Source: Octopus sinensis
Lineage: Eukaryota
Direction of reading: 5' to 3'
NCBI RefSeq assembly: GCF_006345805.1
Contig: NC_043021.1
Location: forward strand, 5,642,001-5,706,000
DNA length: 64,000 nucleotides
Within the stretch, counting starts at the first letter, position 1; the number at the start of each line of letters is the position of its first letter. Below the pieces are notes generated by a model. The model worked only from the letters and a program-made list of their open reading frames with translations. It was not told the DNA's origin and searched no databases. Positions 10,988-48,940 of the stretch are shown here, one piece after another. Both the position numbers and the translations under genes were made by a program.

Positions 10988-11022
<35 letters not shown>

Positions 11023-13370: not shown

Positions 13371-13717
13371 TACGCCTATATCAAACAACCTGTTTCACAA
13401 ACTTCCCAAAAATCAATTGTCTCCGCCCCCCCCTCCAGTGGACGGTGCTGAGTTGTCAAACATTTAAACCAAATTTTCTCAAAACAATTGTCAATGTAAA
13501 GAGATGAAACTATAAAGTGTTTAGAATTGAATTGAAAACAGAGACAATTGCGGAATTGGATAAGAGATTTGAGAAGAAAATAGGGAATAATGTGTATTGT
13601 ATTTCGGACAGGTAAGTGATGCTAGCGGATGGGGCCGTTAGCATCGCTTTCATCTACCATTTTCATTTTCCATTTTTTCATAAACAGGTAATTGTGATGT
13701 TTTATGTCCCCAATGTT

Positions 13718-14110
13718 ACTCTTTTACTCTTTTACTTGTTTCAGTCATTTTGACTGCAGCCATGCTGGAGCACTGCCTTTAATCGAGCAAATCGACCCCG
13801 GGACTTATTCTTTTTTGTAAGCCCAGTACTTATTCTATCGGTCTCTTTTGCTAAGTGACGGGGACGTAAACACACCAGCATCGGTTGTCAAGCAACGCTA
13901 GGGGGACAAACACAGACACACAAACACACATACATATATATATACATATATACGACGGGCTTCTTTCAGTTTCCGTCTACCAAATCCACTCACAAGGCAT
14001 TGGTCGGCCCGGGGCTATAGCAGAAGACACTTGCCCAAGATGCCACGCAGTGGGACTGAACCCGGAACCATGTGGTTGGTTAGCAAGCTACTTACCACAC
14101 AGCCACTCCT
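13718..14110 (-). mobile_element. SINE family A
   Basis: Full-length copy. Confidence 0.9.
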
Positions 14111-14544
14111 ATTCTGTATCTTCTACGTTGGCCCCTTGTGGGGTAATAAAGAAATCGAAAAGAGAAGTAGAGCGATAGAAAGACTGAAAGAAAGGTGGAA
14201 AGAACGATAGAACAAAAGGTGGAAAAATGAGAGGAACCAAATGCTAAGGTGAGAGCCGAAGAGAGCATAACTGGACAGGTGAGCGGTCAAAAACTAAAAG
14301 GTAAGGTGAAAGGAGAAACGGGATGGTCAGGTGGAATCGAAAAGGCAGGGGAGGGAGAGAAAACAGATAGTGAAGGGTAGAGAGGAGGGCGGTATCAGTC
14401 TCCTTGTTAATGAACCGTTGATTTACAGGGACATAAATGAACCAACACTCATTGTCAAGTGGTGGGCGGGTGGGGTCGGTGGAAAAACACAAAACACATA
14501 CGACGATGATGATGGGGAAGATGGCGCCGGAGATGATGATGCAT

Positions 14545-15205
14545 AGGTGGTGGTGGTGGTGCTGCTGCTGCTGGTGGTGGTGGTGGTGGTGGTGGTAGTG
14601 GTGCTGGTGCTGGTGGAGGAGGCGGTGGCGGCGGTGGTGGTGGTGGTGTTGGTGGTGGTTGGTGGTGGTGGTGGTGGTGGTGGTGGTGGTGGTGGTGCTG
14701 CTGCTGCTGGTGGTGGTGGTGGTGGTGGTGGTAGTGGTGGTGCTGGTGCTGGTGGAGGAGGCGGTGGCGGCGGTGGTGGTGGTGGTGTGGTGGTGATGTG
14801 GTGGTGGTGGTGGTGGTGTAGTGGTGCTGGTGCTGGTGCTGGTGGAGGAGGCGGTGGCGGCGGTGGTGGTGGTGGTGGTTGGTGGTGGTGGTGGTGGTGT
14901 GGCGGCGGCGGGGTGGTGGTGGTGGTGGTGATGTGGTGGTGGTGGTGGTGGTGGTGATGTGGTGTGGTGGTGGTGGTGGTGGTGGTGGGGTGGCGGCGGC
15001 GGTGGTGGTGGTGGTGGTGGTTGGTGGTGGTGGTGGTGGTGGTGGCGGCGGCGGTGGTGGTGGTGGTGGTGGTGATGTGGTGGTGGTGGTGGTGGTGGTG
15101 ATGTGGTGGTGGTGGTAGTGGTGGTGCTGGTGCTGGGGTGGCGGCGGCGGTGGTGGTGGTGGTGGTGGTGGCGGCGGCGGCGGCGGCGGCGGCAGCGGCA
15201 GCAGC
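14545..15205. repeat. (GGT/GGC)n G-rich trinucleotide array
   Basis: Read directly. The sub-block GTAGTGGTGCTGGTGCTGGTGGAGGAGGCGG recurs three times. Confidence 0.9.
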
Positions 15206-15729
15206 CATCGTGGCACTGGTCTAGGAGTGATGGTAATGTGGGATTGAGATGGTGTGAAAACAAAGAACAGAAAAATTTTTATTTTTTAAAAAAGATATTT
15301 CATTCATTTATTTATTTATTTATTTCATTTTTGTTTTTTTCCTTTTTCTGTCTGAAACAAGTGAAGACGCCATGAAAAAGCCCAACAGCCAATTTTTAAA
15401 AAAGATGTCGTCAATCTTGTTACAACAACAGCAACAACAACAACAACAACAAACAGCAGAAGCAACAAAAACCACAACAGCAGATAGAACAGAAACAATA
15501 TGAACCCCCCCTCAAACACACGCGCGCGCACGTGCACGCACATGCGCACACACTAACACATTCCGACTGCTGCAAGATGAAAGGTGACATTTAAAAAGTT
15601 CTAAGAAAGAAAAAGGTTTATTAGATAAAGAAAAGAAAGAAAGAAAAAGAAAAGATAAAGAAAAAAGTATTTAATTTAAAGTGTAGAAGAGTGGAATGAA
15701 GTCAGAAAGAGAAAAGATAAAGGAATAAA

Positions 15730-16260
<531 letters not shown>

Positions 16261-21381: not shown

Positions 21382-21639
21382 ATGTATCATACACACAAAC
21401 ATCTCACTATGTGTAGTGTGTGTGTGTGTGTGTACACCTTAAACAATTACTCCAAAATTTCACAAAAGAAGGCTTTTCAAAAATAACAGTCTGAAAGAGA
21501 GTTTTGTTATGTGAAACTTTGAACTAATTATGAATCTAGCAAAAATATTTGTTTTACATTAACAGATATATATATTTATAAACACCTATATAAATACATA
21601 TAACACACTCAGAATATATTCTTTCTTTTCTTTTCTTTC

Positions 21640-22037
21640 TTTTACTTGTTTCAGTTATTTGACTGCGACCATGCTGGAGCACCGCCTTTAGTCGGGCAAA
21701 TCGACCCCGGGACTTATTCTTTGTAAGCCCAGTACTTATTCTATCGGTCTCTTTTTTGCCGAACCGCTAAGTAACGGGAACATAAATACACCAGCATCGG
21801 TTGTCAAGCAATGCTAGGGGGACAAACACAGACATACAAACACACACACACATATATATATATATACATATATACGACAGGCTTCTTTCAGTTTCCGTCT
21901 ACCAAATCCACTCACAAGGCATTGGTCGGCCCGGGGCTATAGCAGAAGACACTTGCCCAAGATGCCACGCAGTGGGACTGAACCCGGAACCATGTGGTCG
22001 GTTAGTAAGCTACTTACCACACAGCCACTCCTGTGCC
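21640..22037 (-). mobile_element. SINE family A
   Basis: Full-length copy. Confidence 0.9.
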
Positions 22038-27349: not shown

Positions 27350-27625
27350 TATTTTATAATTAATAAATAATTTTATGAATTACCTTTGCATTTTTTCCTT
27401 ATTCTTTATATATATATATATATACATATATGAATATTCATAACAAACACAAGTTTACATGTGTGTGTATATAAAAAATTCTAGAAATTTAAAACAAAAT
27501 ATAATGTCAAATTGAATTTCTACGAAACATTTGGTATCTGAACTGAATTAAATTGGTCAAGATCTCTGGACATATCTGCCTCCTCGTCCTTTTGTTCCAC
27601 TGTCCACAGAAACCTGTTGACCAGG

Positions 27626-28577
27626 TCAAAGAATTGTTTGATAATTAAGGGACATGAAATACCGTCCAAAAGTATGTCTGATGTTAGAGGAAGCACCATC
27701 GACAGAGTAGATGTCTGTGTCCAAGCGCTCGTTTGGCTGTTTCAGGTACTGAGAGCCCCGATAATCAAACAGCCACTCTTCTAGGAACTGCTCCTTGTTC
27801 AGCTCACAGATGTTGTGCAGTACGCAGCATGCTTCTACAATCAGGGCGGCATTATCAATTTTAAGAATCTGCTTCCTCAGCAGACACTGCCAGCGTCCCT
27901 TCAGACGACGGAAACTGGTCTCTATCACAGTGTTGGCATTGTCCAGTCTACTATTGAATGTATTTTGCATGACTGTTAATTTTCTGCCACTACTACCACC
28001 ATTACTGTTGCTGCCAGCCTCAAAAGGCACCATCAGCCAATTCAACAATGGGTACTGTGTGTCCCCAATGAGCACAATTGGCATTTCATTGTCCCCCATC
28101 TGCCGATACTTAGGAACAAACAATTTACTGTTTCTTCCGTGTTCATAAACTTTGGAATTTGAAAACACGTGGATGTTATGCAAGCGACCTGGCCATCCCG
28201 TGCTGATGCTGGTAAAACAGAACTCATCGTCGGCAACAGCTTGCAGTACTATCGATGGCCATCCGCAACTATTGTAGTAGTCCGTGCTGTTGTCCTGAGG
28301 GGTGAGGATCGGTACATGGGTGGCATTGATCACGCCAGCACAGTTCGGGAAGCCCCACCGACTCTCAAAGCTCTCGATCACACTTTCAAGTTGCTTGCCT
28401 CTTGGAATGTAAATGTATTTTTTACTGAGTACTTTCACTATCGACTGGCACACCGACCTTAGAATCGAATGTGCACTTGATATTGCAATGCCAAACATGT
28501 TTTCAGCAATCCGATAATCACAGCCAGAAGATAGGATGTAGACTGTTACAGCGACCCATTTTTCAATCGGAAGACTC
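27626..28577 (-). CDS. Harbinger-transposase-derived HARBI1/ALP1-like protein, exon 2 (DDE_Tnp_4-type domain)
   Basis: Acceptor TTTTGCAG| at 28578 (phase 2). Reads SLPIEKWVAVTVYILSSG..FPNCAGVINATHVPI..SIVLQAVADD..GWPGRLHNIHVF..LIGDTQYPL..IETSFRRLKGRW..CCVLHNICE, with stop at 27626. The joined CDS complement(27626..28577,33517..33875) is 1311 nt (436 aa). Confidence 0.88.
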
Positions 28578-29516
28578 CTGCAAAACAAAACAAAAGGAAA
28601 ACAATATATTATTGGTTTCATACAAAGACTTAAAAGCAGAAATTTGGGAAGGCAATGATGATAGTAGTGGTGGCGATGGTAGATGCTTCTCTCAGTTTCC
28701 ATCTACCAAATCCACTCACAAGGCTTTGGCCAGCCAAACGCTATAGAGGACACTTGCCAAGGTGCTACACAGTGGGACTGAACCCAGAACCATATATATT
28801 TTCTATCTTTTACTTGTTTCAGTAATTTAACTACGGCCATGCTGGGGCACCACCTTGAAAGGATTTTTAGACAAACAAATCATTACCAGGACTTCTTTTT
28901 TTTAAAGCTTGGTACTTATTCTATCAGTCTCTTATGCCAAACCACTAATGATGATGATGATGGTGGAGTAATGGTGGAGCTGATGATGAGAATGGTGATG
29001 ATGTCAATGTAATGATGAAGGTGGTGGTGGTGGTAGTGGAGCTGACAATGACGAGGATGGTGATGGTGATAATCATGATGGAGAGGTGATGATGAAATGG
29101 TGGTGGTGGTGACGACGATGATGATAGTAAACTAATTAGTTAGTTAATTTTTTGGCTCAAAAAGCAAAAAGCAAGGCCATGTAGGGGGACATGGAGTTAT
29201 GTACAGGGTGGTGTTCATGTAAAGAGTTCAGGCCACTTGTGGTCAAGGGAGACTGGATGCCCCTCTTCTGCCACCACCTCCACTATTAAGAACCACTCTA
29301 TTACAATAACATTGTCTTTTTTTTCTCAACTTATAGTTTTAATTAGTTTCCTGATGTTTACTGTATTAAACAAAAAAATATGTTAAACACTAACTTAAAT
29401 ATATTATGGCTGGAACTGAAATATAGGATGACCAAAGCTTGAAACGAACACCTGTTACTAGATTAACGCTCAAAAGGTGCTTTTTACATGCCCTGGTTAT
29501 GTATGCATGTGCATAT

Positions 29517-29930
29517 ACTCTCTTTTACTCTTTTAGTTGTTTCAGTCATTTGACTGCGGCCATGCTGGAGCACCGCCTTTAATCGAGCAACTCGACCCCG
29601 GGACTTATTCTTTTTGTAAGACCAGTACTTATTCTATCGGTCTCTTTTGCCGAACCGCTAAGTAACGGGGACATAAACACACCAGCATCGGTTGTCAAGC
29701 AATGCTAGGGAGACAAACACAGACGCACAAACACGCACACGCATATATATATATATATACATATATACGACGGGCTTCTTTCAGTTTCCGTCTACCAAAT
29801 CCACTCACAAGGCTTTGGTCGGCCCGAAGCTATAGTAGAAGACACTTGCCCAAGGTGCCACGCAGTGGGACTGAACCCGGAACCATGTGGTTGGTAAGCA
29901 AGCTACTTACCACACAGCCACTCCTACGCC
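29517..29930 (-). mobile_element. SINE family A (intronic)
   Basis: Full-length copy, followed by diverged copies to about 30820. Confidence 0.85.
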
Positions 29931-30361
29931 TATATATATATATATTCTTTTATATGTTTCAGTAATTTGACTGTGATCATGCTGGGGCATTGCCTTGAAG
30001 GGTTTTAGTAGAACACACCGACCCCAGGACTTATTTTTTTAAGCCTAGTACTTATTCTATCACTCTCTATTGCCAAACAGCTAAGTTACGGGGACATAAG
30101 CACACCAACACCAATTGTTAAGCAGTGGCTGGGGGACATAGATACATATATATATATATGACAGGCTTCTCTCAGTTTCCATCTACCAAATCAACTCACA
30201 AGGCTTTGGTCAGCCCAACGCAATAGAGGACACTTGCCAAGGTGCTACACAGTGGGACTGAACCCAGAACCATATATATTTTCTATCTTTTACTTGTTTC
30301 AGTAATTTAACTGCGGCCATGCTGGGGCACCAAGTAAAAGAGTATATATATATAGATAGAT

Positions 30362-30395
<34 letters not shown>

Positions 30396-30651
30396 CAGGT
30401 TTGCTACCCATCCTCATGGTTTCAGGTTTTGTCCCACTGCAAGTATCTTCTACTATAGCCTTGTGACAACCAAAGCCTTGTCAGTGGATTTGGTCGATGC
30501 AAACTGAAAGAAGGATTTTTAGACAAACAAATCATTACCAGGACATCTTTTTTTTAAAGCCTGGTACTTATTCTATCAATCTCTTATGTCAAACCACTAA
30601 GTTACAAAAACATAAACACACCAATACGTGTTGTCAAGCGGAACAAACACA

Positions 30652-30697
<46 letters not shown>

Positions 30698-30842
30698 TAC
30701 AACAGGCTTCTTTCAGTTTGCATCGACCAAATCCACTGACAAGGCTTTGGTTGGCACAAGGCTATAGTAGAAGACACTTGCAGTGGGACAAAACCTGAAA
30801 CCATGAGGATGGGTACAAACCGGATATATAATATATATATAT

Positions 30843-30877
<35 letters not shown>

Positions 30878-31202
30878 GATATCCTTTAGTGAAAGTGCAT
30901 TCGAAAGTTCATGATCGTAAAAGCGAGTATAGCTCAATAAAAAAACTCTAATGAGGAATGAGGTACAGAGTAGGGACCACCTCACCACATTAGTATTTAT
31001 GGATCAGCATTAACTATGTTGGCACGTCATGCAATTTTAACGATTCCATAGTTTTATACACCTGCGTGTGTGTATGGTGGGATTTGGTGTTTATAAAAAT
31101 ATCTTTAAAATATTCGGTAATATAAACAAACAAAGCACTTGAATGAGTTTATATTGAAAACACGACTGTGTCCCTCCTTTTCAAGCTCCATACCTTTTAT
31201 AG

Positions 31203-31427
31203 CAGTGGTTCTTAACCATTTTTTTGCCTATGGGCTCCTTTAATTCCTATTTCACTTCGAGAAACCCTCATAAACAGTGCTTTGAAAATTCCATTGTATG
31301 TTTATAATTAAATTATTATTAGGAATTGAATTAAAAAATTTTGGGGTATTGCAGAAGCATAACCAATTTATTGCGAATAAAACTTTAACAACGAAAATCT
31401 TATATATACCCAGTTTGAGAACCACAG
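31203..31427. mobile_element. hAT-like MITE
   Basis: Termini CAGTGGTTCTTAAC...GTTTGAGAACCACAG resemble Charlie-type TIRs. The 8-bp TSD is only partly matched. Confidence 0.45.
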
Positions 31428-31856
31428 CACTATAATTTCAAACTAAGCAGAAAGGAAGAGTAATTAAAGGAGCAGAGGGGAAATCAGTAACCAAAAGATA
31501 GGACATATACACACAATGTGTTTTCCTTATAAAAACAAACAAAATCGTTAAGGCGTCGGGAAAAGAATCACATGAAGCATTCCTTCCGGTTTTTTTCACA
31601 TTCTGAATTCGAATTCCGCCGAAGTCGACTTCGCCTCTCATCCTTTCGAGGTCGATAAAATAAAGCACCAGTCAAGTACAGAAGCTGGTATAATCGAAAC
31701 TGCTGGCCAGGTGCCTAAATTAGAAACAACACACATTCACACATGAAATATACAAGGTGAATGTGACTTCGAATTTTCACGAGAGAGAGAAAGATGTAAT
31801 ATATATAATTATTAAGGTTGGTTGCTATGCCGCAATGTGTGTGTGTGTATATATAT

Positions 31857-31887
<31 letters not shown>

Positions 31888-31889
31888 AC

Positions 31890-32191
31890 AGGAATTTGGT
31901 ACGAATAATATACATATATATATAATTAAAGTCAAATACGGGTGGATTCCCTTTGCGGATCTATATCTAGCGTAAGAGCATCCACATAGTGATTCTCTCT
32001 TATAGTTGTGTATACATATATATATATATATAATATATTATGTATGTATGTATACACAACTATAAGAGAGAATCCACTATGTGGATGCTCTTACGCTAGA
32101 TATAGATCCGCAAAGGGAATCCACCCTTATTTTGACTTTAATTATATATATATGTATATATATATATAATATATATTCGTACCAAATTCCT
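31890..32191. repeat. near-perfect palindrome (about 130-bp arms, TA spacer)
   Basis: AGGAATTTGGTACG...GTTGTGTATACAT is mirrored by ATGTATACACAAC...CGTACCAAATTCCT. Confidence 0.9.
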
Positions 32192-33263
32192 TACTGTAGG
32201 TAGTCAATATAAATATAATAACGCAATGTAAAGAAGTTTCATCTCCCCAAAATACGCATTCTTCCTTCTACACACACACACACACATAAGTAGAATCCTG
32301 GTTTAAGCACTTCATATAATCTTTTATAACTTTTTTATTTTCTATATACGTGCGTGTTACTACTCGGAGTTTCGCTAATATCGTTCGTAGCGTTAAATTT
32401 TTTTTTTATTTTGATCAACGATATATATCGAAAAGTTTAATCTCTATTTTACAATAAATATGTATACATTCGACTTCTGTAAATAAAGTAGTTTTTCGTC
32501 CCTTTATAATAAGCTCGTGTGTGTGTGTAGGAAACGTTAATCAGTGGTTGTCGTCAACGAAGATGACTTTGTCCACATGTAAGGTTGTATCGCTAGTGAT
32601 TTCAACCTGGGGAGGCCCACCTCTCTCTCTCTCTCTCTCTATCTCTGATTATACAGTTGCATGCCGAAAACGAAAGAAAACGGAAAATAATGGAACGGAT
32701 CACGAGAAGAACAGGAACCTAGTTCGGAGTAGTGCTTAATTATCAGTTAATTACATTCATGCATATATGGATGTGTGTGTCTACACAAACTTATACATAT
32801 ACGGATGTGTGTGTATATACACTCATACATATATGGATGTATGTATACACACCACATGCACAGATAAATACATACGTATTATACATACATACATACATAC
32901 ATTTATATATTATAATATATATATATATATTATATATAATATATATCAATAATATAGGGTGAAATTAATTAATTTAGAAATAATCATTAATTTCACCAAG
33001 TAGAGTTCGGCATGTAAAAGACCCATTCAAGGAAGGTTTAAGTAATACTATTAATTAAGGGTTCAGCACGATTTTGCCTCACCACACACCGAATTTTAAA
33101 TAGCAGTCAAAAAGAATAGCCAAATACATGTATATATATATAATATAATATATATATATATATATAATATATATTAATTGTGCCTTTCGAAACACTGTTA
33201 AATAAATAAACGATTTCTTTCAATCTGCGTTCAGCTCTCATTTCTTCAATTCACCAATAATAT

Positions 33264-33301
<38 letters not shown>

Positions 33302-33303
33302 CA

Positions 33304-33343
<40 letters not shown>

Positions 33344-33516
33344 ATATATATATACATGTATATATATATATACATGTATATATATATATATACATGTATA
33401 GGTATATGTTTGATTGGTTTTTTTTTTCTCTTTTTTTTTTGTCAAATTTAATTTTTGATTTCGATATTCGGTGTTCGTTTAGAATATATTTTACATAAAA
33501 TAACCAAAAACTCTAC

Positions 33517-33875
33517 CTGGGCATATCTGGAATGGAATATTCTATATCGGATCTGATACAGTTACACAGATACTCAAAAGTTTGTTTCGACATTCTGAAA
33601 TTCTCGATCCAGTCCTGAGAGGAGAACGTGTTCTGTACAATATGGTCCCACCAGTAGGAGTAACGATTCTTGGTCCAAGCCACTCTGTTGGCCGACGGTT
33701 CCAGCAGGAGCGTAGGCAATATGTTGAATACGAAATACATCCTTTGGCTCGATTGGAACCTAGAAAAGGCTCTGATTCGTCTGAAGTGCCGTTTTTTCAT
33801 GTGGTAGCATCTTTTGTCGGCTTCTAATCGTCTTTTTCTGATCATCGCGAATACGAATGCGAGTAGTTCAGCCAT
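33517..33875 (-). CDS. HARBI1/ALP1-like protein, exon 1
   Basis: ATG in AAAATGG context. Reads MAELLAFVFAM...WWDHIVQNTFSSQDWIENFRMSKQTFEYLC..., containing the W.ENFRMS..TF..LC motif typical of Harbinger transposase N-termini. Donor AG|GTAGAG at 33516 is in frame with exon 2. Confidence 0.85.
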
Positions 33876-34060: not shown

Positions 34061-34838
34061 TTGGCGAGCTTTCGTCTCTAGTAGACCTTTCCGTCGATTT
34101 CCGTAAAAAATTTTTTTTTTTATACATATGGGCTTGCGGGAACTTTTGAAGTAATGAGAGCGAAAGAGACTAAGAGAAAGCGGCAATCTTTCGTCTCTAG
34201 TAGACCTTTCCGTCGATTTCCGTAAAAATTTTTTTTTTTTTTACATATGGGCTTGCGGGAACTTTTGAAGTAATGAGAGCGAAAGAGACTATCATTGGCG
34301 ATCTTTCGTCTCTAGTAGACCTTTCCGTCGATTTCCGTAAAAAAATTTTTTTTTTTACATATGGGCTTGCGGGAACTTTTGAAGTAATGAGATCGAAAGA
34401 GACTATCTTGGCGATATTTCGTCAGTAGACTTTCCGTCGATTTCCGTAAAAAAATTTTTTTCATATGGCTTGCGGGATTTTTGAGTAATGAGAGCGAAAG
34501 AGACTATCATGGCGAATTCGTCTTTGTAGACCTTTCCGTCGATTTCCGTAAAAAATTTTTTTTTTTACATATGGGCTGCGGGAATTTTTGAAGTAATAGA
34601 GCGAAAATAGACTATCATTGGCGATATTTCGTCTTTTAGTAACTTTCCGTCGATTTCCGTAAAAAAATTTTTTTTTTTACATATGGGCTTGCGGGAACTT
34701 TTGAAGTAATGAGAGCGAAAGAGACTATCATTGGCGATATTTCGTCTTTAGTAGACCTTTCCGTCGATTTCCGTAAAAAAAAATTTTTTTTTTACATATG
34801 GGCTTGCGGGAATTTTTGAAGTAATGAGAGCGAAAGAG
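34061..34838. repeat. tandem repeat, 7 units of about 105-120 bp
   Basis: Unit TTGGCGA..TTTCGTC..TAGACCTTTCCGTCGATTTCCGTAAAAAATTTTTTTACATATGGGCTTGCGGGAA..GAGAGCGAAAGAGACTA. Confidence 0.9.
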
Positions 34839-36369: not shown

Positions 36370-36908
36370 TGGTCACCAAAGGCGAGGTTGGAGGGCTCCC
36401 GATAAGCTTACCAAGCAAAGTGATAGAGCTTTTGGGCAGTCTCCCTTACTACACGGAAGATGACATCCCAACTGATGGAATTGAAGGCGTTTTTGAAGTC
36501 TAGTTTAAGGATGACCCTTGGGGACTCAGAAAGCAAGTTAGTGAAAGCTCTAGTGGCATGGGCTTCAGCCTCATAGTCTAGCTTAGTACCCACCCGTAGC
36601 TGGGTAGGAGAAAATTTGGTTGACAGGCATTTAGAAACTGAGGACAGACACACCTGTCGCAGAGTACCACTAACTGCTATGGGGCGGAAGTCACCATTGG
36701 GCTTGGTAAGAGCAAATAGTTTGGCACCAAAGAACAGGGGACGAATGTAGGGAAGAACACACTCGCACGAGAACAAGTTTATAAACTGCGATAGGTTCTC
36801 CAAGAGCTCAAGACCAGCATCACCGGCTGACAGGGAGATGCCATCTCTGAGATGTCGAGACCGTAAGCTATCGATCCCAACACCAGAAACCCACTGGAAA
36901 AGATGCAA
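36370..36908 (-). mobile_element. CRE-clade-like non-LTR retrotransposon reverse transcriptase fragment
   Basis: LFALTKPNGDFRPIAVSGTLR..PTQLRVG..AEAHATR..KLDFKNAFNS..W*AYREPSNLAFGD matches CRE-type RT motifs; it carries a stop codon. Confidence 0.7.
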
Positions 36909-37950
36909 TCGGGATTTCCTAGCCGGCGGCCCGTGTCTCTCGGCATGTAAGGCGGAGCGCTATGAAAGGCCGATCACATTTGCGGAGGTCATAGAGGTGC
37001 TTTGAGAGTGCCCCGGGGACAAGTCACCGGGACTGGATGGTCTTCCTTACGAATTTTATAAGAGTATGCCAAACTTGTTTGGGAACATACTGGCCGGTGT
37101 ATATGCGAACTGCTAGCAGAACAGGAGAATCCATAAATATGTGAGCCGGGGAGTAGTGACACTGATCAGGAAGGACCCGAGCAAGGGTAATGACATTAAT
37201 AACTTTAGGCCCATAACTCTGCTAAACACAGAGTTAAAGATTTTGGCCAATTGTTAGCCAAGAGATTGAGGCTTGTAGTGGGCGACCTGGTGGGAGAAGC
37301 ACAGACATGTGCCATCCAAGACAGGACAATACGCGACAACCTTCACCGCATACACTACACTATAGAGCGGGTGGGTAAAATTTCTGGCAAATGTAGGGCA
37401 CTGGTGAATTTAGACCAGTCTAAGGCATTCGATAGGGTTGACCATCGGTATCTGGGAGCAGTCCTCAGGGCGGTTGGACTGGACCCGACTTTTCGTAGAT
37501 GGTTCAATGCTATGTATAGCGACATCGATTCAATCGTCCGGGTAAACGGTTTCTTCTCGAAGCCGTTCGTGATCGAACGTTCAATTCGCCAGGGCTGCCC
37601 CCGCTTCTGTATGTATTGGCACTTAAGCCACTGCTGCGGAAATTGGAGGCCACGGGGGGAGATCCGCGTGATCTATGTTACGGTAGGAGAATGACGGCAT
37701 ATGCGGATGATGTCACCATCATCGTGTCTGATGAAGGGCAGCTACCTCGTGTAGAAGAGGCCATCAAAAGATACGAAGAAGTGGCAGGAGCAAAAATTAG
37801 CTAGGAAGTATCAGTCGGCTTGCAACTCGGCACCCGTAGGGGCAAGTCGATGTCTCCCAACAGCGTCGTGGGACGTTGGACGGAGGGCCCGGTTAAATTG
37901 CTTGGAGTCTGGTTTGGACCAGATCTCCAGATGGAGAAAAACTGGAGCGA
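36905..37950 (+). mobile_element. Tx1/L1-like LINE RT fragment (frameshifted)
   Basis: KSPGLDGLPYEFY, NFRPITLLNTELKILA, LDQSKAFDRVDH, SIRQGCP and AYADDVT motifs, with stops and frameshifts. Confidence 0.85.
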
Positions 37951-38404: not shown

Positions 38405-38655
38405 TTTAACTTTAGATTAGATGGGTTGATAGAATATATTGCCAGTCCAGTAGTGAAATTTTATTCAAAATACAACGTATCCCCCCCACCAACAACCTGT
38501 CGCTTTCTTGGAAAAAACATCATTCACTTTTCCTTTATTTATAATTGAATAATGATATATTTTCAATCGTAGTTACGCTAATGAAATAACATAAAAATAA
38601 AATAACGCTCAAAATCGGTTTCTAGCTTTACTTTAAGAAAAATAAAAACTGGAAA

Positions 38656-38782
38656 ATGTCGGACGAAGCTTTTCGGAAAGCTGGATTAAATATCGATGAA
38701 TTAAATAATATACGGTTATTAGATCCTGATATATTTCAACAGAGCTCTGAACTGAAGGATGCTTGCAAAGAATTTACAGACA
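38656..38782 (+). CDS. IFT20: intraflagellar transport protein 20, exon 1
   Basis: MSDEAFRKAGLNIDELNNIRLLDPDIFQQSSELKDACKEFTD, donor A|GTAAGT. The full CDS join(38656..38782,41323..41408,44530..44633,49513..49594) is 399 nt (132 aa). Confidence 0.95.
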
Positions 38783-39090
38783 GTAAGTTTATTTATTTTG
38801 GTTACTTTATGTAATCTTCGAAGAGAAATCATTTCTCCGTAGAAGACATTGTTGTGTTGGTAACTAAGGGACATCAATGTAATCAAAATAATGGGTAGAG
38901 ATGTAGTTTAGCTTGTTTAATTAATTACTATTTCAGTGAACGAGAAGTAATTATCAAATTACAACAGATATTTATTACGTAAATATTGTGCAGCAACGAA
39001 AGCTGTAGATATAAAAAAAAAGATTGTTTGTTAATGGTTTAAAAAAAAAAAAAAGCTCAAGTCCGACTTCGATGTGTCTATACATATATA

Positions 39091-39471
<381 letters not shown>

Positions 39472-39913
39472 CGATAGTTCCTGAGCTAACGTAGGATCTT
39501 TTACTAGCTAGAAATAACAGCTATATATCCCTCAAGTCACAGTCACCGTCGTAAAGGTGTAATACGTTGGATTATGTGGTTCTGGATTCTGTGCACAGAA
39601 GGGAAAAGATGTTTTATCAGGGCTGACCTGGAAGCTAAACAACAACAACAAGAAAAACATGAAAGAAATTCCGTGTAACCCCTGTGAACCATAGAAAATA
39701 TTGGGATCAGACATTGTAGGGCCCGAAGCCCACATTTTTGTGAGTAGCGAAAAGTGGGAACGGGGGTAAGGATGAAGAATCTACAAAATTCACTTCCCTT
39801 CCAAGAAATATAGCGATTTTCACATGAGTCGAACTTAGAACGTCAAGAAACGCAACTAAAGTCGGTAGGTAGGTATTTTCGATGAGAAGGGGTGAGGAAA
39901 CAATCCGGAATTT

Positions 39914-40166
39914 ATCATCATCATCATCATTTAATGTCCGCTTTCCATGCTAGCATGGGTTGGACGGTTCAACTGGGGTCTGGGAGGCCCGAAGGCTGCA
40001 CCAGGCCCAGTCTGATCTGGCAGTGTTTCTACAGCTGGATGCCCTTCCTAACGCCAACCACTCCTTGAGTGTAGTAGGTGCTTTTTATGTGCCACCGACA
40101 CAGGTGCCAGACGAGGCTGGCGAACGGCCACGCTCGGATGGTGTTTTTTATGTGCCACCGGCACGT
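39914..40166 (-). mobile_element. SINE family D (RTE-like 3' tail ending (GAT)n)
   Basis: Tail AGCATGGAAAGCGGAC..AAATGATGATG and internal GTGCCACCGG repeats. Other copies lie at about 46930-47175, 49955-50278, 52506-52795 and 56745-57045. Confidence 0.75.
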
Positions 40167-40841
40167 GTCGTCCATGAAGTACCAGTCAAGCACTGGAGAT
40201 CAATGTAATCGACTTAGCCCTCCCCAAAAAATTTCAGGTCTTGTGCCTTTAGTAGAAAGGATTATTATTATTATTAAGGTGACAAGCTGGGCAAAATGCT
40301 TTGCAGTATTTCATCCATTTTTACATTCTGAGTTCAAATGCCATCGAGGTTGACTTTTCCTTTCATCATTTCAAGATTAGTGAATTATGTAGCAGGTGAG
40401 CACTGGAGCCATGTAATCAACTTGGACCCTCCCCCAAATTTCTGGCTTTGTACTTATAATAGAAAGGATTATTGTTGTTGTTGTTGTTATTGTTATAATA
40501 TTTTACTTCTCAGAGCTCTCAATCTTACTTGCTCTGGTTAATTCTGTGAGAGCAGACAGCATCCTGTTGTGAAAGGTCTCACAGGGTCTCTTTCCATAAA
40601 TTATAATACTTGGAACTTTGGTGTTAGGTATCATAGAAGATACTCAGTTCTTTGAGCATGCTCTACCCTCATGTCAATTCCAATGTCTCTGACATATTTC
40701 TCAGAGCTGGATTTTCTATGGGGAGCATGCCCTTGCTTACTCCCAACCTCAGTTTCTAGACACGAGTGGTCCCAAGACCAAGGCCTCTACCACGATTTCT
40801 AAGGAATGTGGTGAAAAACTAGCTAGGAAGGCAGGGACGTT

Positions 40842-41192
40842 ATCAAAGAAGCTTGAGAGGCGGTTGGATGGAACCTACACTCGCCTCCTTATGAGAGCTC
40901 AAAATCTCTCGTGGAAGCGCCATCCAACCAAAATGCAAATATATGGGAAATTACCACCTGTGTCATCTCTTGTGAAAGATAGGAGAGTCCAGTTTGCTGG
41001 ACATTGTTGTAGAGCTGAAAAAGAGGCAATTTCTACTCTTCTCCTCTGGAAGCCATCTACTCGCAATACCAGAAGGCGCACACTCTCCTACCCTGATGTA
41101 ATCTCCAGGGATACAGGCATCCAGCAACAGGACCTGGCGTAGCATGGTAAATTCCATTGTCTCGACCACAGTCGAACAATGATGATGATGAC
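40842..41192 (+). mobile_element. RTE-type LINE 3' end
   Basis: LDGTYTRLLMRAQNLSWK..RRVQFAGHC..DTGI, followed by a (GAT)n tail. Confidence 0.75.
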
Positions 41193-41322
41193 TACTCCCT
41201 GAGACGCCTTTTGGAGCCCCTTCTACCTATCAATTTCTACAATTTACCACCTCGGTGTTATCATTGTTGTTCATGTAACTTACTATGTACTAAACCCCTG
41301 ATGTTTTGTTTGTTTATTTCAG

Positions 41323-41408
41323 AAATCGAGTCCTTTCATAAAATCGTAGCGTCTGTCATTGCAGTAGTTGACAATGTTGCAAAAGAAGTGGAAAAAGAGA
41401 AAATGAAG
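41323..41408 (+). CDS. IFT20: IFT20 exon 2
   Basis: TTTCAG| (K)IESFHKIVASVIAVVDNVAKEVEKEKMK |GTACAT; 86 nt. Confidence 0.95.
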
Positions 41409-41489
41409 GTACATCTTCCTCATTACTTCTCAGACTTTTTTAAACCATTGCTCCCTTTTCTCTCACTAATATCTATTCAATGCTCCACC

Positions 41490-41908
41490 TATTTCTTTAC
41501 TACCCACAAGGGGCTAAACACAGAGGGGACAAACAAGGACAGACATAGGTATTAAGTCAGTTTACATCGACCCCAGTGCATAACTGGTACTTATTTAATC
41601 AACCCCGAAAGGATGAAAGGCAAAGTCAACCTCGGCGGAATTTGAACTCAGAACGTAGCGGCAGACGAAATACCTATTTCTTTATTACCCACAAGGGGCT
41701 AAACACAGAGGGGACAAACAAGGACAGACAAACGGATTAAGTCAATTACATCGACCCCCAGTGCGTAACTGGTACTTATTTAATCGACCCCCGAAAGGAT
41801 GAAAGGCAAAGTCGACCTCGGCGGAATTTGAACTCAGAACATAGCGGCAGACGAAATACCGCTGAGCATTTCGTCCGGCGTGCTAACGATTCTGCCAGCT
41901 CGCCGCCT
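41490..41908 (-). mobile_element. SINE family B dimer with a single 14-bp TSD
   Basis: TSD TTCAATGCTCCACC at 41476-41489 and 41909-41922. Confidence 0.85.
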
Positions 41909-43563
41909 TTCAATGCTCCACCACCACTCACTATGATAATCATGGATATCGATATATATGCACCATATTAGATTAAATACACCACATACAAAAATTGCTG
42001 GTCCTGTACAAAAATTAGAAACCAATATTCTTCTCATTCTTTCTGTCTGTCTCTTTCTCTCTCATTCTCTTTGTTTACGTATGTGTGATGTTTCTTTCTC
42101 CCCACCCCTCTCTCTATGTTTATGTGTGAGTTCCTAGATATTTTTGTGAGTATGTCTAATGTCTTTATTATTACGACTGAGGGCAGCAAGCTGTCAGAAT
42201 AATAAGTGCGTCAAACAAAATACTTAGTGCCATTTCTTCCATCCCTTTACTTGTTAAGCTTGAATTCCATTGAGATTGGCTTTGCTTTTCATCCTTTCAG
42301 GTTCAATAAAATATGTACCAATTGTGCACTAAGGTCAATGCAATTGACTAGGTTCCTCCCCATAAAATGTACTTAAAGTAGAAAGACTTACTACTATTAT
42401 TATTATTGAGCAAGAGAATAGCACATGCCATTAAAGTGACACTGGGGTAAAATATATTAAGGCGACGAGCTGGCAGAAACGTTAGCATGCCAGGAGAAAT
42501 GCGTAGCCGTATTTCGTCTGCCGTTACGTTCTGAGTTCAAATTCCGCTGAGGTCAACTTTGCCTTTCATCCTTTCAGGGTCGATAAATTAAGTACCAGTT
42601 ACGCACTGGAGTCGATTTAATCGACTTAATCCGTTTATCTCCCCTTGTTTGTCCCCTCTGTGTTTAGCACCTTGTGGGTAGTAAAGAAATATATATAAAG
42701 TCCATTATACCCATCATGATTACCCCTCTGATAAGGGTAGACCAGGCACATGCATCACAACCATATGTGCGCAAAATGGTGATCTCATATCAGGATGAGC
42801 AGCACATGACCTTGCAGGTGGGGCCCAGTTAGAATTTTCTTCAAGTCGAGTACCCCATCCCTGATATTCAGGTCCCTGATATTCAGGTTTGTTTTAAGGA
42901 TGATGAACGAAACACCCATGTTTCTAGAAGTGAATTATTCAAACCCCAAAGAATTCCCCTCAATATATGGCTATGATGCTCCTCCACTACATCAGCTCGT
43001 GATCAGAGATGCACATATCGTCAGCCACTAAGGGACATGGTCAACTGGTTAAGGTCAAACAACTGACAAGCAAATCTGTGGTATTGAGCAGAATATTTGC
43101 TGCAGTCTGCCTTTTATACCAAGACAAAACAATGTACATGATAACACTATCAATGAATTAAGATCAGAAGCCATGAGAGCCACTGCCTGGTAGAGTACCA
43201 AGCTGTCAGAATTGTTAGCACACCAGGCAAGATGCTCAGCAGCATTTTGTCTATCTTCATGTTCTGAGTTCAAATCCCACCAAGGTTGACTTTTGCCTTT
43301 CACCCTTTTGGGGTTGGTAAAGTGAGTACTAGTTGAGTATCGGGGTCAATGGAATTGACTTACTTCCTCCTCTGATCTTACAGGCCTTGTCCCTAAATTT
43401 GAGACCAATGTTACTGAAAGTGGCAAACTGGCAGAACCATCAGAGCATCAAACAAAGTGCCTGGTGGTATTTCATCCAGCTCTTTATGCTGCTCTGAGCT
43501 CAAATACCATCAAGAGCAATTTTACCTTTCATCCTTGCAAAGTAAACAAAAAATACAGTACCA

Positions 43564-43954
43564 GGTGCAGGAGTGGCTGTGTGGTAAGTAGCTTGTTTAC
43601 CAACCACATGGTTCTGGGTTCAGTCCCACTGCGTGGCACCTTGGGCAAGTGTCTTCTGCTATAGCCTCGGGCCGACCAAAGCCTTGTGAGTGGATTTGGT
43701 AGACGGAAACTGAAAGAATCCCGTCGTATATATGTATATATATATATATGCGTGTGTGTGTCCCTAGCATTGCTTGACAACCGATGCTGGTGTGTTTATG
43801 TTCCCGTTACTTAGCGGTTCGGCAAAAGAGACCAATAGAATAAGTACTGGGCTTACAAAAGAATAAGTCCCGTGGTCAAGTTGCTCGATTAAAGCCGGTG
43901 CTCCAGCATGGCCGCAGTCAAATGACTGAAACAAGTAAAAGAGTAAAAGAGAGT
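43564..43954 (+). mobile_element. SINE family A
   Basis: Full-length copy. Confidence 0.9.
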
Positions 43955-44200
43955 ACCAATCACGTACTGGGAATAATGTAATTAACCTTCCCGACTCTTC
44001 AAAATTGTTGTCCTTGTACCAAAATTTGAAAGATTTATTACTGTTGAGGGTGGTGAGCTGGCAGAATTGCAGAAGTGTTGGGAAAAGAACACCTGTTTGT
44101 TCCCACTAGAGTCATTTTTACCTTTCATCCTTTTGAGGTTGATAAAAATACTACAAATTGAACACAGGAGTTAATGTAATCACCTTCACCCACTCCTTAA

Positions 44201-44419
44201 CCCTTTAGTATTTAAACCGGCCATATCCGGCCAAAATAGTTAATCTGCTTTATGTTCAAACTGACCAGATCCAGGCCCTCACACCTACCCTACAATGTTA
44301 TTCTACATTAAGTAATTACACCATCAAGATCTTGAAGATATGAGATAATGCATGATTAATTCAAATCAATGGGAATCAATAAGCATTATGCTTGATGGAA
44401 TAATCTGAACACTAAAGGG
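44201..44419. mobile_element. piggyBac-like MITE (PB1)
   Basis: TTAA|CCCTTTAG...CTAAAGGG|TTAA. Confidence 0.8.
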
Positions 44420-44529
44420 TTAAAACTGCTATCCTCGTGTCTAAATCAGAAGCCATTATTATTATTATTGCAGTTGTTTTTATTATTCAAGAAATCATTG
44501 TTTGTATTTTATATGTTTCCCTTAATCAG

Positions 44530-44633
44530 GCAATTGGTTCGCGGAACATGCTGAAATCCATAACGAAACAGAGAGAAGCAGAACAGATGCAGCTTTTGGC
44601 ACTGATCACAGAAAAAACAATGCAGTTAGAAAG
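44530..44633 (+). CDS. IFT20: IFT20 exon 3
   Basis: TCAG| [34 protein letters not shown](R) |GTCAGA; 104 nt. Confidence 0.95.
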
Positions 44634-44810
44634 GTCAGAGTTCACCTTTTTCACATTTTTTTTTTTTAATACTTACCATATGTCCAACCCATGCTAGCAT
44701 GGAAAACGGACGTTAAATGATGATGATGACTTACCGAGTCTGCAGGAAGCAGCAGAAACAAACTGTGAGTTTTGCGGGCCCTCCAAGATCGGGAAGTTTG
44801 AAGCCATTAA

Positions 44811-45771
44811 CCCTTTCGTTACTGTATTTATTTTGAGATGTTCTTTGTTTTTTTCAGTTAATTTTAAATGTAACAAAGAATTTAGTAAAATAACTTAGTT
44901 ATCATTAAGCTAGTGTTAGGAACATAAATTGTGACTAAAGTTTGGTGGAAGATTTTAATTTAAAACTTATGAAAACAAGACATTTGTACTACAGAGCCAG
45001 AAGCAGTGTCAGCTAGGTTGGTATCAAAAGGGTTAAATATAACAAGGAATTTAGTAAAATAACTTAGTTATCATTAAGCTTGTATTAGGAACATAAATTG
45101 TGACTAAGGTTTGGTGGAAGATTTTAATTAAGAACTTTTGAAAATAAGACATTTGTAATACAGAGCCAGAGCCAGTTTCAGCCATGTTGGCATCAAAGGG
45201 TTAAATAGCATGGTGATTTTTACCCTTTTATTATCCTATTTCTGTTGAGATGCTCTGTGTTTCTTTCAATTAATTTTAAATATAACAAAGAATTTAGTAA
45301 AATAACTTAGTTATCATTAAGCTAGCGTTAGGAACGTAAATTGTGACTAAGGTTTGGTGGAAGATTTTAATTCAAAACTTATGAAAACAAGACATTTGTA
45401 CTACAGAGCCAGCGGTGGTTTCAGCCGGGTTGGTATCGAAAGGGTTAAACACACCTCTACATTTGGGCTGATGCACATTAGAAGCAGTTGGAAGGGTGCA
45501 GATTGAAGGAAATTTAGGCTATTATTTCTGCTGATTATTTTTCTTCTTAACCCTTTCGTTACTGTATTTATTTTGAGATGCTCTGTGTTTCTTTCAATTA
45601 ATTTTAAATATAACAAAGAATTTAGTAAAATAACTTAGTTATCATTAAGCTAGTGTTAGGAACATAAATTGTGACTAAGGTTTGGTGGAAGATTTTAATT
45701 CAAAACTTATGAAAACAAGACATTTGTACTCAGGGCCAGAGCTGGTTTCGGCCAGGTTGGTAATGAAAGGG
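44811..45771. mobile_element. cluster of four piggyBac-like MITEs (PB2)
   Basis: Copies at 44811-45032, about 45033-45200 (partial), 45223-45444 and 45551-45771. CCCTTT..AAAGGG termini, mostly TTAA-flanked, all in the same orientation. Confidence 0.75.
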
Positions 45772-46849
45772 TTAATGTTCTGTTTAAACTGTTGCAGCTC
45801 AACACCTGCAGGAATGGCATGAGTGGAGGTTCCAGAAGCACCTTGACTGAGGCCTTGTAAGTGGATTTGGCTGACAGAAACCGAAAGAGGCTTGGTATAT
45901 GGATGTATATCATAATCATCATCATTTAATGTCTGTTTTCCAAGATGGCATGGGTTGGATGGTTCAACAGAAACTGGCAAGTCAGAGGACTGTTCTATGC
46001 TCTGATGCCTGCTTTGGCATGGCTTCTGTGGCTGGATAACTTTCTTACTGCCAACCATTTTACACAGTGTACGAGATGCTTTTTATATGGCACCAACAAC
46101 AGTGAAGTTACCAAATAACCTACAAGATGACACTCGTCACCCAAAGGGTGGAGAGCACTGTTGAGGGACAGAAAAAGGTGTTTTGCATCAGAGAGGAAAC
46201 ACGGCCACCACAGGTGAGGAGTACACGTGACACATAAACGGCACCCAGTACATTCTGTAAAGTGGGTGTCATTAGGAAGGGCAGGCGGTAGAGCTTGGCA
46301 CAGTCTTCTGACTTCAGAGGAATTTGAACTCAAACCATCCAACCCATGTCAACATGGAAAATGAATGCTACATGTACATGTGGGAGTCTCCTTGTCTTAA
46401 CATCATGTGGCAGTTGTAAATAAGTGTCACTGTCACACAAGCAGTGTCCTTCACCCTTCACTTCCAGTCTTCTGTGAAAACGTGTCCACCTACGAAGAAA
46501 TATTGCTTTTGTCGGAAACAGGTGAAGATTGATGGCAATAAGGGCATCCAGCTATGAAAACGCAGCCTCAATGAATCCCGTCCGACTCTGTGAATCATGA
46601 CTTATTTCATGCTCTTTCTTTACCTTAGCAGTGTTAGAAATCCCACAAAAACAGAGTCACACACACTGCTCTTCCTGTCCCTAATTGATGAAGTCGTTGC
46701 AGAAAAATACAAAACAAAGGACAAGAGTCTTTCACTAGTTGTAATTGACCCCAGAAGAATGAAAGCTACTGTCAAATCTTGCTGTGATCTGAACATCAAG
46801 AGACAGATGTAAATGCTGAAATCTTACTCCACTGTTGTTATTATTCTTT

Positions 46850-48940
46850 TCTACTCTAGGCACAAGGCCCGAAATTTTGGGGAGTGGGCCAGTTGATTAG
46901 ATTGACCCCAGTACACTACTGGTACTTAATTTATCGAGGCACGTTAAAAGCACCAACCGATCGTGGCCGATGCCAGACTCCCCTGGCACCTGTGCCAGTG
47001 GCACATAAAAAGCACTCACTACACACGCGGAGTGGTTGGCGTTAGGAAGGGCATCCAGCTGTAGAAACACTGCCAGATCAGACTGGAGCCTGTTGCAGCC
47101 CCTGGCTTCCCAGACCCCGGTCGAACCGTCCAACCCGTGCTAGCGCGGAAAACGGACGTTAAACGATGATGATGAAAGGATGAAAAGCAAAGTCGACTTC
47201 GGTGAAATTTGAACTCAGAACGTAAAGGCAAATGAAATACCTATTTCTTTATTACCCACAAGGGGCTAAACACAGAGGGGACAAACAAGGACAGACATAG
47301 GTATTAAGTCGATTACATCGACCCCAGTGCGTAACTGGTACTTAATTTATTGACCCCGAAAGGATGAAAGGCAAAGTCGACCTCGGCGGAATTTGAACTC
47401 AGAACAAGGCAAATGAAATACCACTACGCATTTCGCCTAGCGTGCTAACATTATTATTCTTATTGTTAAGGCAAAGAGTTAGCAGAATCGTTAGTGCACC
47501 GGGCGAAATGCTTAGCGGTATTTCATCTGCCGCTACATTCTGAGTTCAAATTCCACCAAGGCCGACTTTGCCTTTCATCCTTTTGGGGGTCGATAAACTA
47601 AGTACCAGTTACGCACTGGGGTTGATGTAATCGACTTAATACCTATGTCTGTCCTTGTTTGTCCCCTCTATGTTTAGCCCCTTGTGGGTAATAAAGAAAT
47701 AGGTATTTCGTCTGCCGCTACATTCTGAGTTCAAATTCCACCAAGGTCGACTTTGCCTTTCATCCTTTTGGGGTCGATAAACTAAGTACCAGTTGAATAC
47801 TGGGGTCGATGTAATCGACTATCCCCCTCCCCCAAATTTCAGGCCTTGTGTCTACAGTAGAAAGGATGATTATTATTATTAAGGCAGTGAGCTGGCAGAA
47901 TCGTTAGCATGCCACGCAAAATGCTTTGTGTCGTTTCATCCATCCTTACATTCTGTGTTCAAATTCCACTGAAGTCGACTTTACCTTTCATCCTTTTGGG
48001 GTCAATAAATTAAGTACCAGTTGAGTACTGGGGTTGATGCAATCGGCTAGTCCCCTCACACAAATTTTAGGCCTTGTGCCTATAGTAGAAAGGATTATTA
48101 TTAAATTCTGCTGATGCCAACTTTGCCTTTCATCTTTTCGGGGGTTAATGAAATAAATACCAGTTACACACTGGGGCCAATGTAATTGACTAGCCCCCCC
48201 CCCCTCGAAATTCTAGGCCTTGTGCCTAATAGTAGAAAGGATCATTATTATTATTATTGTTATACTTTTGCTATAAGACTACTACAACTGTTAATTGCTA
48301 ACAAGCACACAGTATTTTGTTTTGCAACCATAATATACTATCAAGTATGTTGATTTCAAATTTGGGATATAGGCTGGCAAGTTCAGGGTAGATGTCACAT
48401 TGACCCCAGTGCTCAACTGGTAATTATTTTATCAACCCCAGAGGAATTTGAACTCAGACTATAAAGATGGATGAAATGCTGCTAAACATTTCACCCAGCA
48501 TGCTAATAAATCTGTCAAGTACTACCGGCGAGCTGGCAGAAACGTTAGCACGCCAGGCGAAATGCGTAGCCATATTTCGTCTGCCGTTACGTTCTGAGTT
48601 CAAATTCCGCCAAGGTCGACTTTGCCTTTCGTCCTTTTGGGGGCGATTAAACAAGTACCAGTTACGCACTGGGGTCGATATAATCGACTTAATCCATTTG
48701 TCTGCCCTTGTTTTCCCCCTCTGTGTTTAGCCCCTTGTGGGTAGTAAAGAAATGGGTATTTCGTCTGCCATTACGTTCTGAGTTCAAATTCCGCCAAGGT
48801 CAACTTTGCCTTTCATCCTTTCGGGGGCGATTAAACAAGTACCAGTTACACACTGGGGTCGATATAATCGACTTAATCCCTTTGTCTGTCCTTGTTTGCC
48901 CTCTCTGTGTTTAGCCCCTTGTGGGCAATAAAGAAATATA
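46850..48940. mobile_element. dense cluster of SINE B/D copies and dimers
   Basis: Repeated GTCGACTTTGCCTTTCATCCTTT core in both orientations. Confidence 0.8.

Follow-up and report, generated by a model that had tools for sequence, protein, structure and literature searches.

Harbinger transposases have repeatedly been made into host genes, as exemplified by vertebrate HARBI1, by the plant genes ALP1/2, HDP1 and PANDA, and by a dozen insect genes. Partner pairs are known in HARBI1-NAIF1, ALP1-ALP2 and HDP1-HDP2, and HARBI1, which carries the annotation of a putative nuclease, has kept the catalytic Asp-Asp-Glu (DDE) triad. Here we characterize a Harbinger-derived gene of Octopus sinensis, located on the minus strand at positions 27626-33875 of a 64,000-nt stretch of contig NC_043021.1 (assembly GCF_006345805.1, 5,642,001-5,706,000; hereafter the window), which is annotated yet undescribed, and for which an origin by domestication is very nearly certain. 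Like vertebrate HARBI1, it is an apparently single-copy host gene that has lost its terminal inverted repeats (TIRs) and has any Myb-type partner at a separate locus; unlike HARBI1, which keeps the DDE triad, the octopod protein does not, and the gene is not a HARBI1 orthologue. A literature search returned no Harbinger-derived host gene described in cephalopods or other molluscs.

How does this locus compare with the described systems? The insect genes DPLG1-7 of Drosophila, APLG, LPLG and BPLG are domesticated PIF/Harbinger transposases with dN/dS (ratio of non-synonymous to synonymous divergence) of 0.04-0.33, often built of two exons with one intron of variable length (PMC9710019). They share with the octopod gene an intact frame, the lack of TIRs and target-site duplications (TSDs), conserved microsynteny and low dN/dS, and several of them are 'transposase-only', without an adjacent MADF gene, as is the case here (PMC9710019). 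They suggest no mechanism for the octopod gene. The criteria for PIF domestication that we applied were taken from the same study (PMC9710019), and the octopod gene shows an intact frame with conserved exon-intron structure, conserved synteny and purifying selection, as detailed below. In plants, ALP1/ALP2, which are accessory components of the Polycomb repressive complex 2 (PRC2), and HDP1/HDP2 are likewise domesticated Harbinger transposases. Arabidopsis ALP1 has DGA instead of DDE, carries a single conserved intron near its 5' end and acts via protein-protein contacts (PMC4671723). The octopod gene resembles it in its mutated triad and its single conserved intron; however, ALP1 has lost the second Asp and the Glu, whereas the octopod protein has lost the first Asp, and the resemblance implies no link to Polycomb.

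The octopod gene comprises coding exon 1 (33517-33875; 359 nt, residues 1-119 plus 2 nt, with the ATG at 33875) and coding exon 2 (27626-28577; 952 nt including the stop, residues 120-436), separated by a single, repeat-rich phase 2 intron of 4,939 bp with GT..AG ends (28578-33516), all on the minus strand. The corresponding minus-strand open segments are 33875-33513 and 28702-27626; joined from 33875-33517 and 28577-27626, the exons form 1311 nt of uninterrupted sequence, 436 codons plus a stop. The splice sites read CAG/GTAGAG at the donor after 33517 and TTTTGCAG/GA at the acceptor before 28577, and an in-frame TAA stands 7 codons 5' of the ATG. The start of the 3' untranslated region probably lies at 27426-27625 (minus strand), as the 200 nt past the stop are 92.6% identical to O. 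bimaculoides; AATAAA and ATTAAA signals first occur at 27033 and 27043. The 436-aa product is identical to the RefSeq model XP_029651090.1 of O. sinensis, named 'ALP1-like', whose 90% cluster holds one further member, XP_014775530.1 (O. bimaculoides, 437 aa), and the same two exons are joined in the RefSeq models of both Octopus species and in the GenBank model of Argonauta hians. The two-exon reading frame is real, well past chance expectation; an earlier note, made from the letters of the window alone, had proposed just this frame, with the exact coordinates and splice sites.

Exon 1 encodes a basic N-terminal helix and the beginning of a helix-turn-helix region, exon 2 the remainder of that region and an RNase H-like DDE_Tnp_4 core. 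The Pfam PIF/Harbinger transposase domain DDE_Tnp_4 (PF13359) covers residues 204-375 (27812-28327, minus strand) with E = 7.4e-28 and 97.6 bits against a cut-off of 24.8, and spans profile positions 2-158 of 158; a weak match to the related Plant_tran family is found in the same protein.

The catalytic pocket of this domain has changed, as becomes clear when 43 homologues are aligned. In the place of the first catalytic Asp, which is D in 42 of the 43, the octopus protein has Asn204 (codon AAT, 28325-28327), and the IDGTH motif reads INATH. YYNRKG reads YYNSCG, with Ser223-Cys224 (AGT TGC, 28265-28270) in the place of residues that are R in 40 and K in 41 homologues, and the conserved Asp of PGxxHD (D in 41/43) is Asn254 (AAC, 28175-28177). 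Kept are Asp292 (GAC, 28061-28063), the second catalytic Asp in the GD motif, found as Asp in 41 of the 43 and also kept in Argonauta, and, in Octopus, Glu339 (GAG, 27920-27922), the catalytic Glu of the IE..F..LK motif, found as Glu in 40; all these codons lie on the minus strand. The motif readings of the earlier note, and the two codons whose positions it gave (AAT and AAC), are exact. Thus, the triad is N-D-E in Octopus (N204/D292/E339) and G-D-D in Argonauta, and an intact DDE is present in neither. Argonauta has GGC, for Gly, at 204 and GAC, for Asp, at 339, and Ser-Arg at 223-224. As O. sinensis, O. bimaculoides and A. hians use the identical AAC codon at 254, this change predates the split of the three species. 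At position 204, in turn, Octopus has AAT and Argonauta GGC, both of them a single step away from GAY; the position differs by lineage while the rest of the protein has been held, so that the metal-binding residue was lost or changed more than once.

These replacements are not scattered. Of 55 positions that are conserved in at least 90% of the 43 homologues, 45 are retained in Octopus, and the ten that are changed (D204N, G205A, R223S, K224C, D254N, A255I, A294Q, K303V, R335N and G343R) all lie within or adjacent to the catalytic motifs. Argonauta differs from the family residue at all ten, eight times with the same residue as Octopus or a conservative counterpart. Gone are four conserved basic residues around the pocket, namely R223, K224, K303 and R335. 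An AlphaFold2 model (mean predicted local distance difference test, pLDDT, 86.1; predicted template-modelling score, pTM, 0.78) follows an RNase H-like fold in the order of its strands and helices, with residue 204 on the first core strand (199-209), residue 292 just after the fourth strand (288-290), residue 339 on a long helix (322-348), and residue 254 at the beginning of the helix after strand 3. The modelled placement of 204, 292 and 339 is the usual one for a DDE triad in such a fold. A sequence search of the PDB gave no match at E up to 1.

The gene is held in common by distantly related octopods. In O. bimaculoides (L001), all 27 kb of the locus are colinear with the window, IFT20 lies upstream on the opposite strand, and exon 1 length and the donor and acceptor sequences of the gene equal those of O. 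sinensis. In the distant octopod A. hians (L003; BAAFZT010000066.1, 10001-13627), exon 1 occupies 10001-10359, with the donor GTAGGT, and exon 2 occupies 12022-13627 as a single open frame. Exon 1 has 359 nt and the same phase in all three species, and the intron sits at one codon position and phase in each, although its length varies from 1,662 bp in A. hians to 4,939 bp in O. sinensis and 5,868 bp in O. bimaculoides. The open frames encode 436 aa in O. sinensis, 437 aa in O. bimaculoides and 654 aa in A. hians. Three large inserts of low complexity account for the extra length of the latter; they abound in Ala, Ser, Gln, Asp and Gly and contain acidic stretches, DDDDDGDYEEDDDDDDEYD among them, as well as tracts of poly-Gly, poly-Ser and poly-Gln. 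They fall into predicted surface loops, one following strand 1, one preceding the GD strand and one at 307-318, a loop that is of low confidence already in the Octopus model. We note that the public Argonauta annotation divides the orthologue into three genes of 237, 231 and 113 aa.

The neighbourhood is conserved as well. In the window, IFT20 (38656-49594, plus strand) lies head-to-head with the Harbinger-derived gene, with Pfam IFT20 matches on its exon pieces and exons matching A. hians at 38655-38793, 41314-41411, 44516-44642 and 49511-49594; beyond it are the end exons of a gene of the BTB_2 (potassium-channel tetramerisation) type at 53087-53291 and 54016-54108 on the minus strand, whose translations are 91-100% identical to Argonauta. 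The order of BTB_2 gene, IFT20 and Harbinger-derived gene is kept in the O. sinensis window and in the A. hians locus, and, judged from the shared flanks, independent insertions at the three loci are excluded. Argonauta has 1,090 bp between the start codons of the gene and IFT20; in O. sinensis the distance is 4,780 bp and in O. bimaculoides 5,742 bp, the larger gap in both Octopus species being filled by later repeats. Presence of the gene is established in Octopus and Argonauta. A search of 1.84 billion representatives brought up one closer sequence, a 237-aa 'partial' A. hians protein that is 79% identical over residues 1-216. A profile search with the Octopus and Argonauta proteins found no further cephalopod orthologue, a weak absence, since the index searched also missed the Argonauta protein, and a search with IFT20 fragments for other cephalopod loci yielded just one short Logan fragment.

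Throughout this time the protein has been under constraint. Between O. sinensis and O. bimaculoides there are 8 non-synonymous and 48 synonymous differences, which by the Nei-Gojobori method correspond to dN = 0.0078, dS = 0.199 and dN/dS = 0.039; the binomial probability of so few non-synonymous changes under neutrality is P = 7e-25. Nucleotide identity between the two is 93.6% in exon 1 and 96.2% in exon 2, as against approximately 79-89% in the alignable parts of the intron and flanks. Octopus and Argonauta proteins share 75% amino-acid identity over 434 aligned residues, at proportions of non-synonymous and synonymous differences of pN = 0.16 and pS = 0.85, with synonymous sites saturated. 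Exon 1 encodes the best conserved part, 102 of its 116 residues (88%) being identical to Argonauta. There is, thus, strong purifying selection on the protein at least since the divergence of Octopus and Argonauta, and the earlier note, which had suspected a selected gene from its open frame and looked to syntenic orthologues as the check, is borne out on both counts.

What is missing from the locus is equally telling. We found no TIRs or TSDs around the gene between 24 and 38 kb, where the only inverted matches are (AT)n, and no Pfam domain of the Myb, SANT or MADF type between 20 and 41 kb, where a scan of concatenated stop-to-stop pieces of at least 55 aa, with low-complexity pieces removed, matched only degraded reverse-transcriptase pieces and IFT20. 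The Myb protein encoded by the element of a relative, described next, has no tblastn match in the window, the O. bimaculoides locus or the A. hians locus, which is a weak negative, as such proteins evolve fast. Nor did tblastn reveal a second copy or fragment of the gene in these three sequences, and the protein collections contain, besides the orthologues, no octopus paralogue of more than 47% identity. The earlier claims that neither flanking TIRs nor a partner Myb/SANT frame nor TIR-flanked extra copies are to be seen thus stand within this range.

As a positive control we inspected the element of P0002, the second-ranked match (40% identity over 95% of the length) and the closest relative that was looked at in this way. 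It resides in two contigs of ENA assembly ERZ25072196 with unrelated flanks (L005 and L006, 4676-7555 in each), as a 2,880-bp block whose two copies are 99.93% identical. Its ends, read off the boundaries of the two-copy alignment, carry the 16-bp terminal inverted repeat AGCCCCGTTTACACGT and are bordered by the 3-bp TSDs ATT and TAT; it carries an intronless 417-aa transposase, whose DDE triad is intact, and, convergent to it, a Myb_DNA-bind_4 gene. It is a textbook Harbinger transposon and apparently was recently active. The octopod gene resembles it in domain layout and conserved core and, within the loci and protein collections searched, lacks the rest: the canonical element is intronless and compact, at 2.88 kb, and it has TIRs, TSDs, the Myb_DNA-bind_4 gene, an intact DDE and near-identical copies. 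The hallmarks missing at the octopod locus are thus easily detected in a genuine element of the same lineage. P0003, the relative of highest identity (47%), is intronless across the octopod intron site.

A neighbour-joining tree of 30 sequences places the three octopod proteins in one clade in 100 of 100 bootstraps, in species-tree order and on a long stem among animal Harbinger transposases; P0003/P0007 are the best candidate for a sister group, in only 25 of 100 bootstrap samples. The clade is allied neither with the plant sequence, an outgroup match of 27% identity compared with 40-47% for animal transposases, nor with fish proteins named HARBI1 (34-36% identity). Orthology to HARBI1 was tested with these fish proteins, the sequence set having no verified mammalian HARBI1. 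Since the octopod clade stands apart from plant and HARBI1-named proteins, the RefSeq name 'ALP1-like' denotes similarity and not orthology. Beyond the orthologues all proteins found are at most 47% identical, and the ten next-best representatives come from a brachiopod, a caecilian, a gastropod, a sea urchin, a fish, a frog, a crinoid and further assemblies, with no cephalopod among them. By its sequence relationships, the octopod gene represents an independent domestication, in a different phylum from the insect cases. As a side observation, two of the homologues look like further separate domestications: P0023 (Apteryx mantelli, 639 aa), in which a KRAB domain (PF01352) is fused to the transposase and the motifs read IDATH and YANCNG, and P0055 (Microcaecilia unicolor, 441 aa), which reads VVSALH and GKISHA and is thus without both the first Asp and the HD-motif Asp.

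What can be discerned about the origin and role of the gene? The best overall explanation, to which we give moderate credence, is a host gene of incirrate octopods that was born by domestication of a PIF/Harbinger transposase and whose product serves as a catalytically dead adaptor. A Harbinger transposase gene, now devoid of its TIRs and its Myb-like companion, has remained head-to-head with IFT20 at least since Octopus and Argonauta diverged. The protein probably retains the N-terminal helix-turn-helix part, for binding of DNA or a partner, and the RNase H-like fold, with DNA cutting and joining gone. We consider it likely that transposase catalysis has been lost, because the first Asp and pocket residues are replaced and a single triad substitution cripples Ping; the suspicion of the earlier note that the protein is catalytically dead is strengthened by the Gly at the first catalytic Asp in Argonauta and by the shared N254. 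A non-catalytic adaptor or chromatin role, proposed by analogy, is possible but more tentative: the product would be a nuclear DNA- or protein-binding adaptor, probably paired with a Myb/SANT/MADF-type partner encoded elsewhere, as in HARBI1-NAIF1, ALP1-ALP2 and HDP1-HDP2, and its targets may be chromatin or transcription complexes. More speculative still, and rather doubtful at present, is a specific form of this role, in which an octopod-specific dead-transposase regulator would recruit a chromatin or transcription complex, together with an unlinked Myb/SANT partner, to sites resembling old Harbinger ends. Its gene may have acquired expression by landing next to the IFT20 promoter, given that a mere 1.1 kb separates the start codons in Argonauta, whose genome is compact. 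If that were true, the loop inserts of Argonauta would be added interaction regions.

Several points limit or weigh against this interpretation. The splice junction is a predicted one, supported by three gene annotations and by conservation. Copy number was assessed in the 64-kb window, the two orthologous loci and protein collections. A Foldseek search of the PDB gave a best E of 0.2, with weak matches to retroviral integrases only; as no match is significant, the assignment of the fold rests on Pfam and on the predicted order of secondary structure. There is no linked Myb-like gene, and nothing points specifically to Polycomb or any other complex. Finally, D292 and E339 are kept in Octopus, so that a residual or altered activity may persist, and an Asn can still bind metal weakly.

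These last points lead to the view that the protein has remained an enzyme and works as a nuclease or recombinase through a rebuilt active site, comparable to the putative nuclease HARBI1. It would be in keeping with the retention of D292 and E339 in Octopus, with the conservation of H207, H253 and the whole fold, and with a core domain that is also under strong selection. However, the position of the first metal-binding Asp, Asn in Octopus and Gly in Argonauta, is no longer held, E339 is Asp in Argonauta, and the four conserved basic residues by the pocket are lost. Moreover, a single substitution in the DDE triad drastically lowers transposition of Ping, according to earlier work as cited in PMC4671723, and we regard continued enzymatic activity as quite improbable. 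A mere transposon relic, whether still mobile or dead with a frame that is open by chance or mis-annotation, would account for the plain Harbinger transposase homology of the protein and for a region full of other repeats. Against it stand a locus that is orthologous in three species and has kept its neighbours and intron position, a dN/dS of 0.04 (P ~1e-24), a frame that is open in all three despite synonymous saturation between Octopus and Argonauta, and the lack of TIRs, TSDs and a Myb gene at the locus, which together leave this explanation practically no likelihood. On synteny, dN/dS, open frames and missing transposon features, we rejected an active transposon, a chance open frame and a pseudogene alike.

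A further alternative is a domesticated gene whose task is to restrain related Harbinger transposons; its dead transposase would still bind the Myb partner, the active transposase or the ends of the element and thereby poison transposition complexes. Truncated or dead transposases acting as repressors have a precedent in the KP protein of P elements. The octopod protein has kept the N-terminus and fold, that is, the DNA-binding and oligomerising parts, and lost the catalytic pocket; its N-terminal exon is the most conserved, with the 88% identity to Argonauta, and canonical, recently active Harbinger elements of the same lineage occur in other animals. Yet the octopus data contain no related active Harbinger element and no non-orthologous octopus protein above 47% identity. 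Furthermore, repressors of a single family usually decay after the family dies, whereas this gene, at a dN/dS of 0.04, has survived since the split of Octopus and Argonauta. On balance we judge restraint of transposons to be unlikely, if less so than a surviving enzyme.

The surroundings of the gene bear the marks of repeat activity. About 35% of the intron consists of copies of short interspersed repeats with up to approximately 20 occurrences elsewhere in the window, and microsatellites are also numerous. One repeat copy at 28683-28953, approximately 105 bp upstream of the acceptor and repeated up to 19 times in the window, is absent from O. bimaculoides, where the orthologous interval measures 109 bp as compared with 573 bp in O. 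sinensis, and by this comparison it is specific to the O. sinensis lineage. Further upstream in the intron lies a cluster of interspersed repeats at 29512-30881, with parts at 29512-30332 and 30344-30881, of which the segment 29931-30332 is colinear with O. bimaculoides L001 13623-14039 at 84% identity and is thus probably common to both species. As the one copy is absent from O. bimaculoides and the other has a colinear counterpart there, the repeats are of differing ages. The earlier note had described a 4.9-kb intron filled with short interspersed nuclear elements (SINEs) and other repeats of different ages; the length, the repeats and their differing ages hold, whereas the SINE identity is putative, neither ARAGORN nor Rfam having detected a tRNA-like head in the intron repeats. 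An interspersed repeat of approximately 400 bp is very abundant, with at least 8 full-length copies in the window that are 79-87% identical to an O. bimaculoides copy (e.g. 29523-29930, 21627-22037, 8412-8807, 13722-14110, 43564-43948, 51848-52252, 55348-55736 and 59624-60050). Its core of approximately 113 bp is 82-91% identical to copies in A. hians (L003 7069-7181), which suggests a conserved-core SINE family; for this repeat, too, ARAGORN and Rfam gave no tRNA-like head in the stretches scanned.

On the 5' side of the gene, a minisatellite at 34061-34838 (115-bp unit, 6.9 copies, 88% matches) begins 186 bp upstream of the ATG, in the putative promoter region. The O. bimaculoides alignment ends exactly at its edge and the corresponding interval there has no tandem repeat, so that by sequence comparison the minisatellite appears specific to the O. 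sinensis lineage. Degraded reverse-transcriptase (RVT_1) pieces at 36408-37700, in the space separating the gene from IFT20, are probably the remnant of a long interspersed nuclear element (LINE), and they help to explain the intergenic distance of 4.8 kb here as against 1.1 kb in Argonauta. Elsewhere, the window contains an assembly gap of 100 N at 5621-5720, a 370-bp unit duplicated 1.9 times at 11522-12233, and very long microsatellites, namely (TTG)n at 8959-9616, (TG)n at 9978-11304, (GGT)n at 14546-15171 and (GATA)n at 15788-16210, which account for the extreme GC/AT skew and the long meaningless open frames at 8959-16228.

With the octopod gene, one more instance is added to a well-known type of gene birth, and the understanding of transposase domestication is unchanged by it. 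The loss of catalysis can nevertheless be traced residue by residue, with N254 common to all and position 204 changed independently in two lineages. As a single-locus gene that is syntenic across a deep octopod split and strongly constrained, with its changes centred on the catalytic pocket, it provides cephalopod biologists with a defined candidate regulator.

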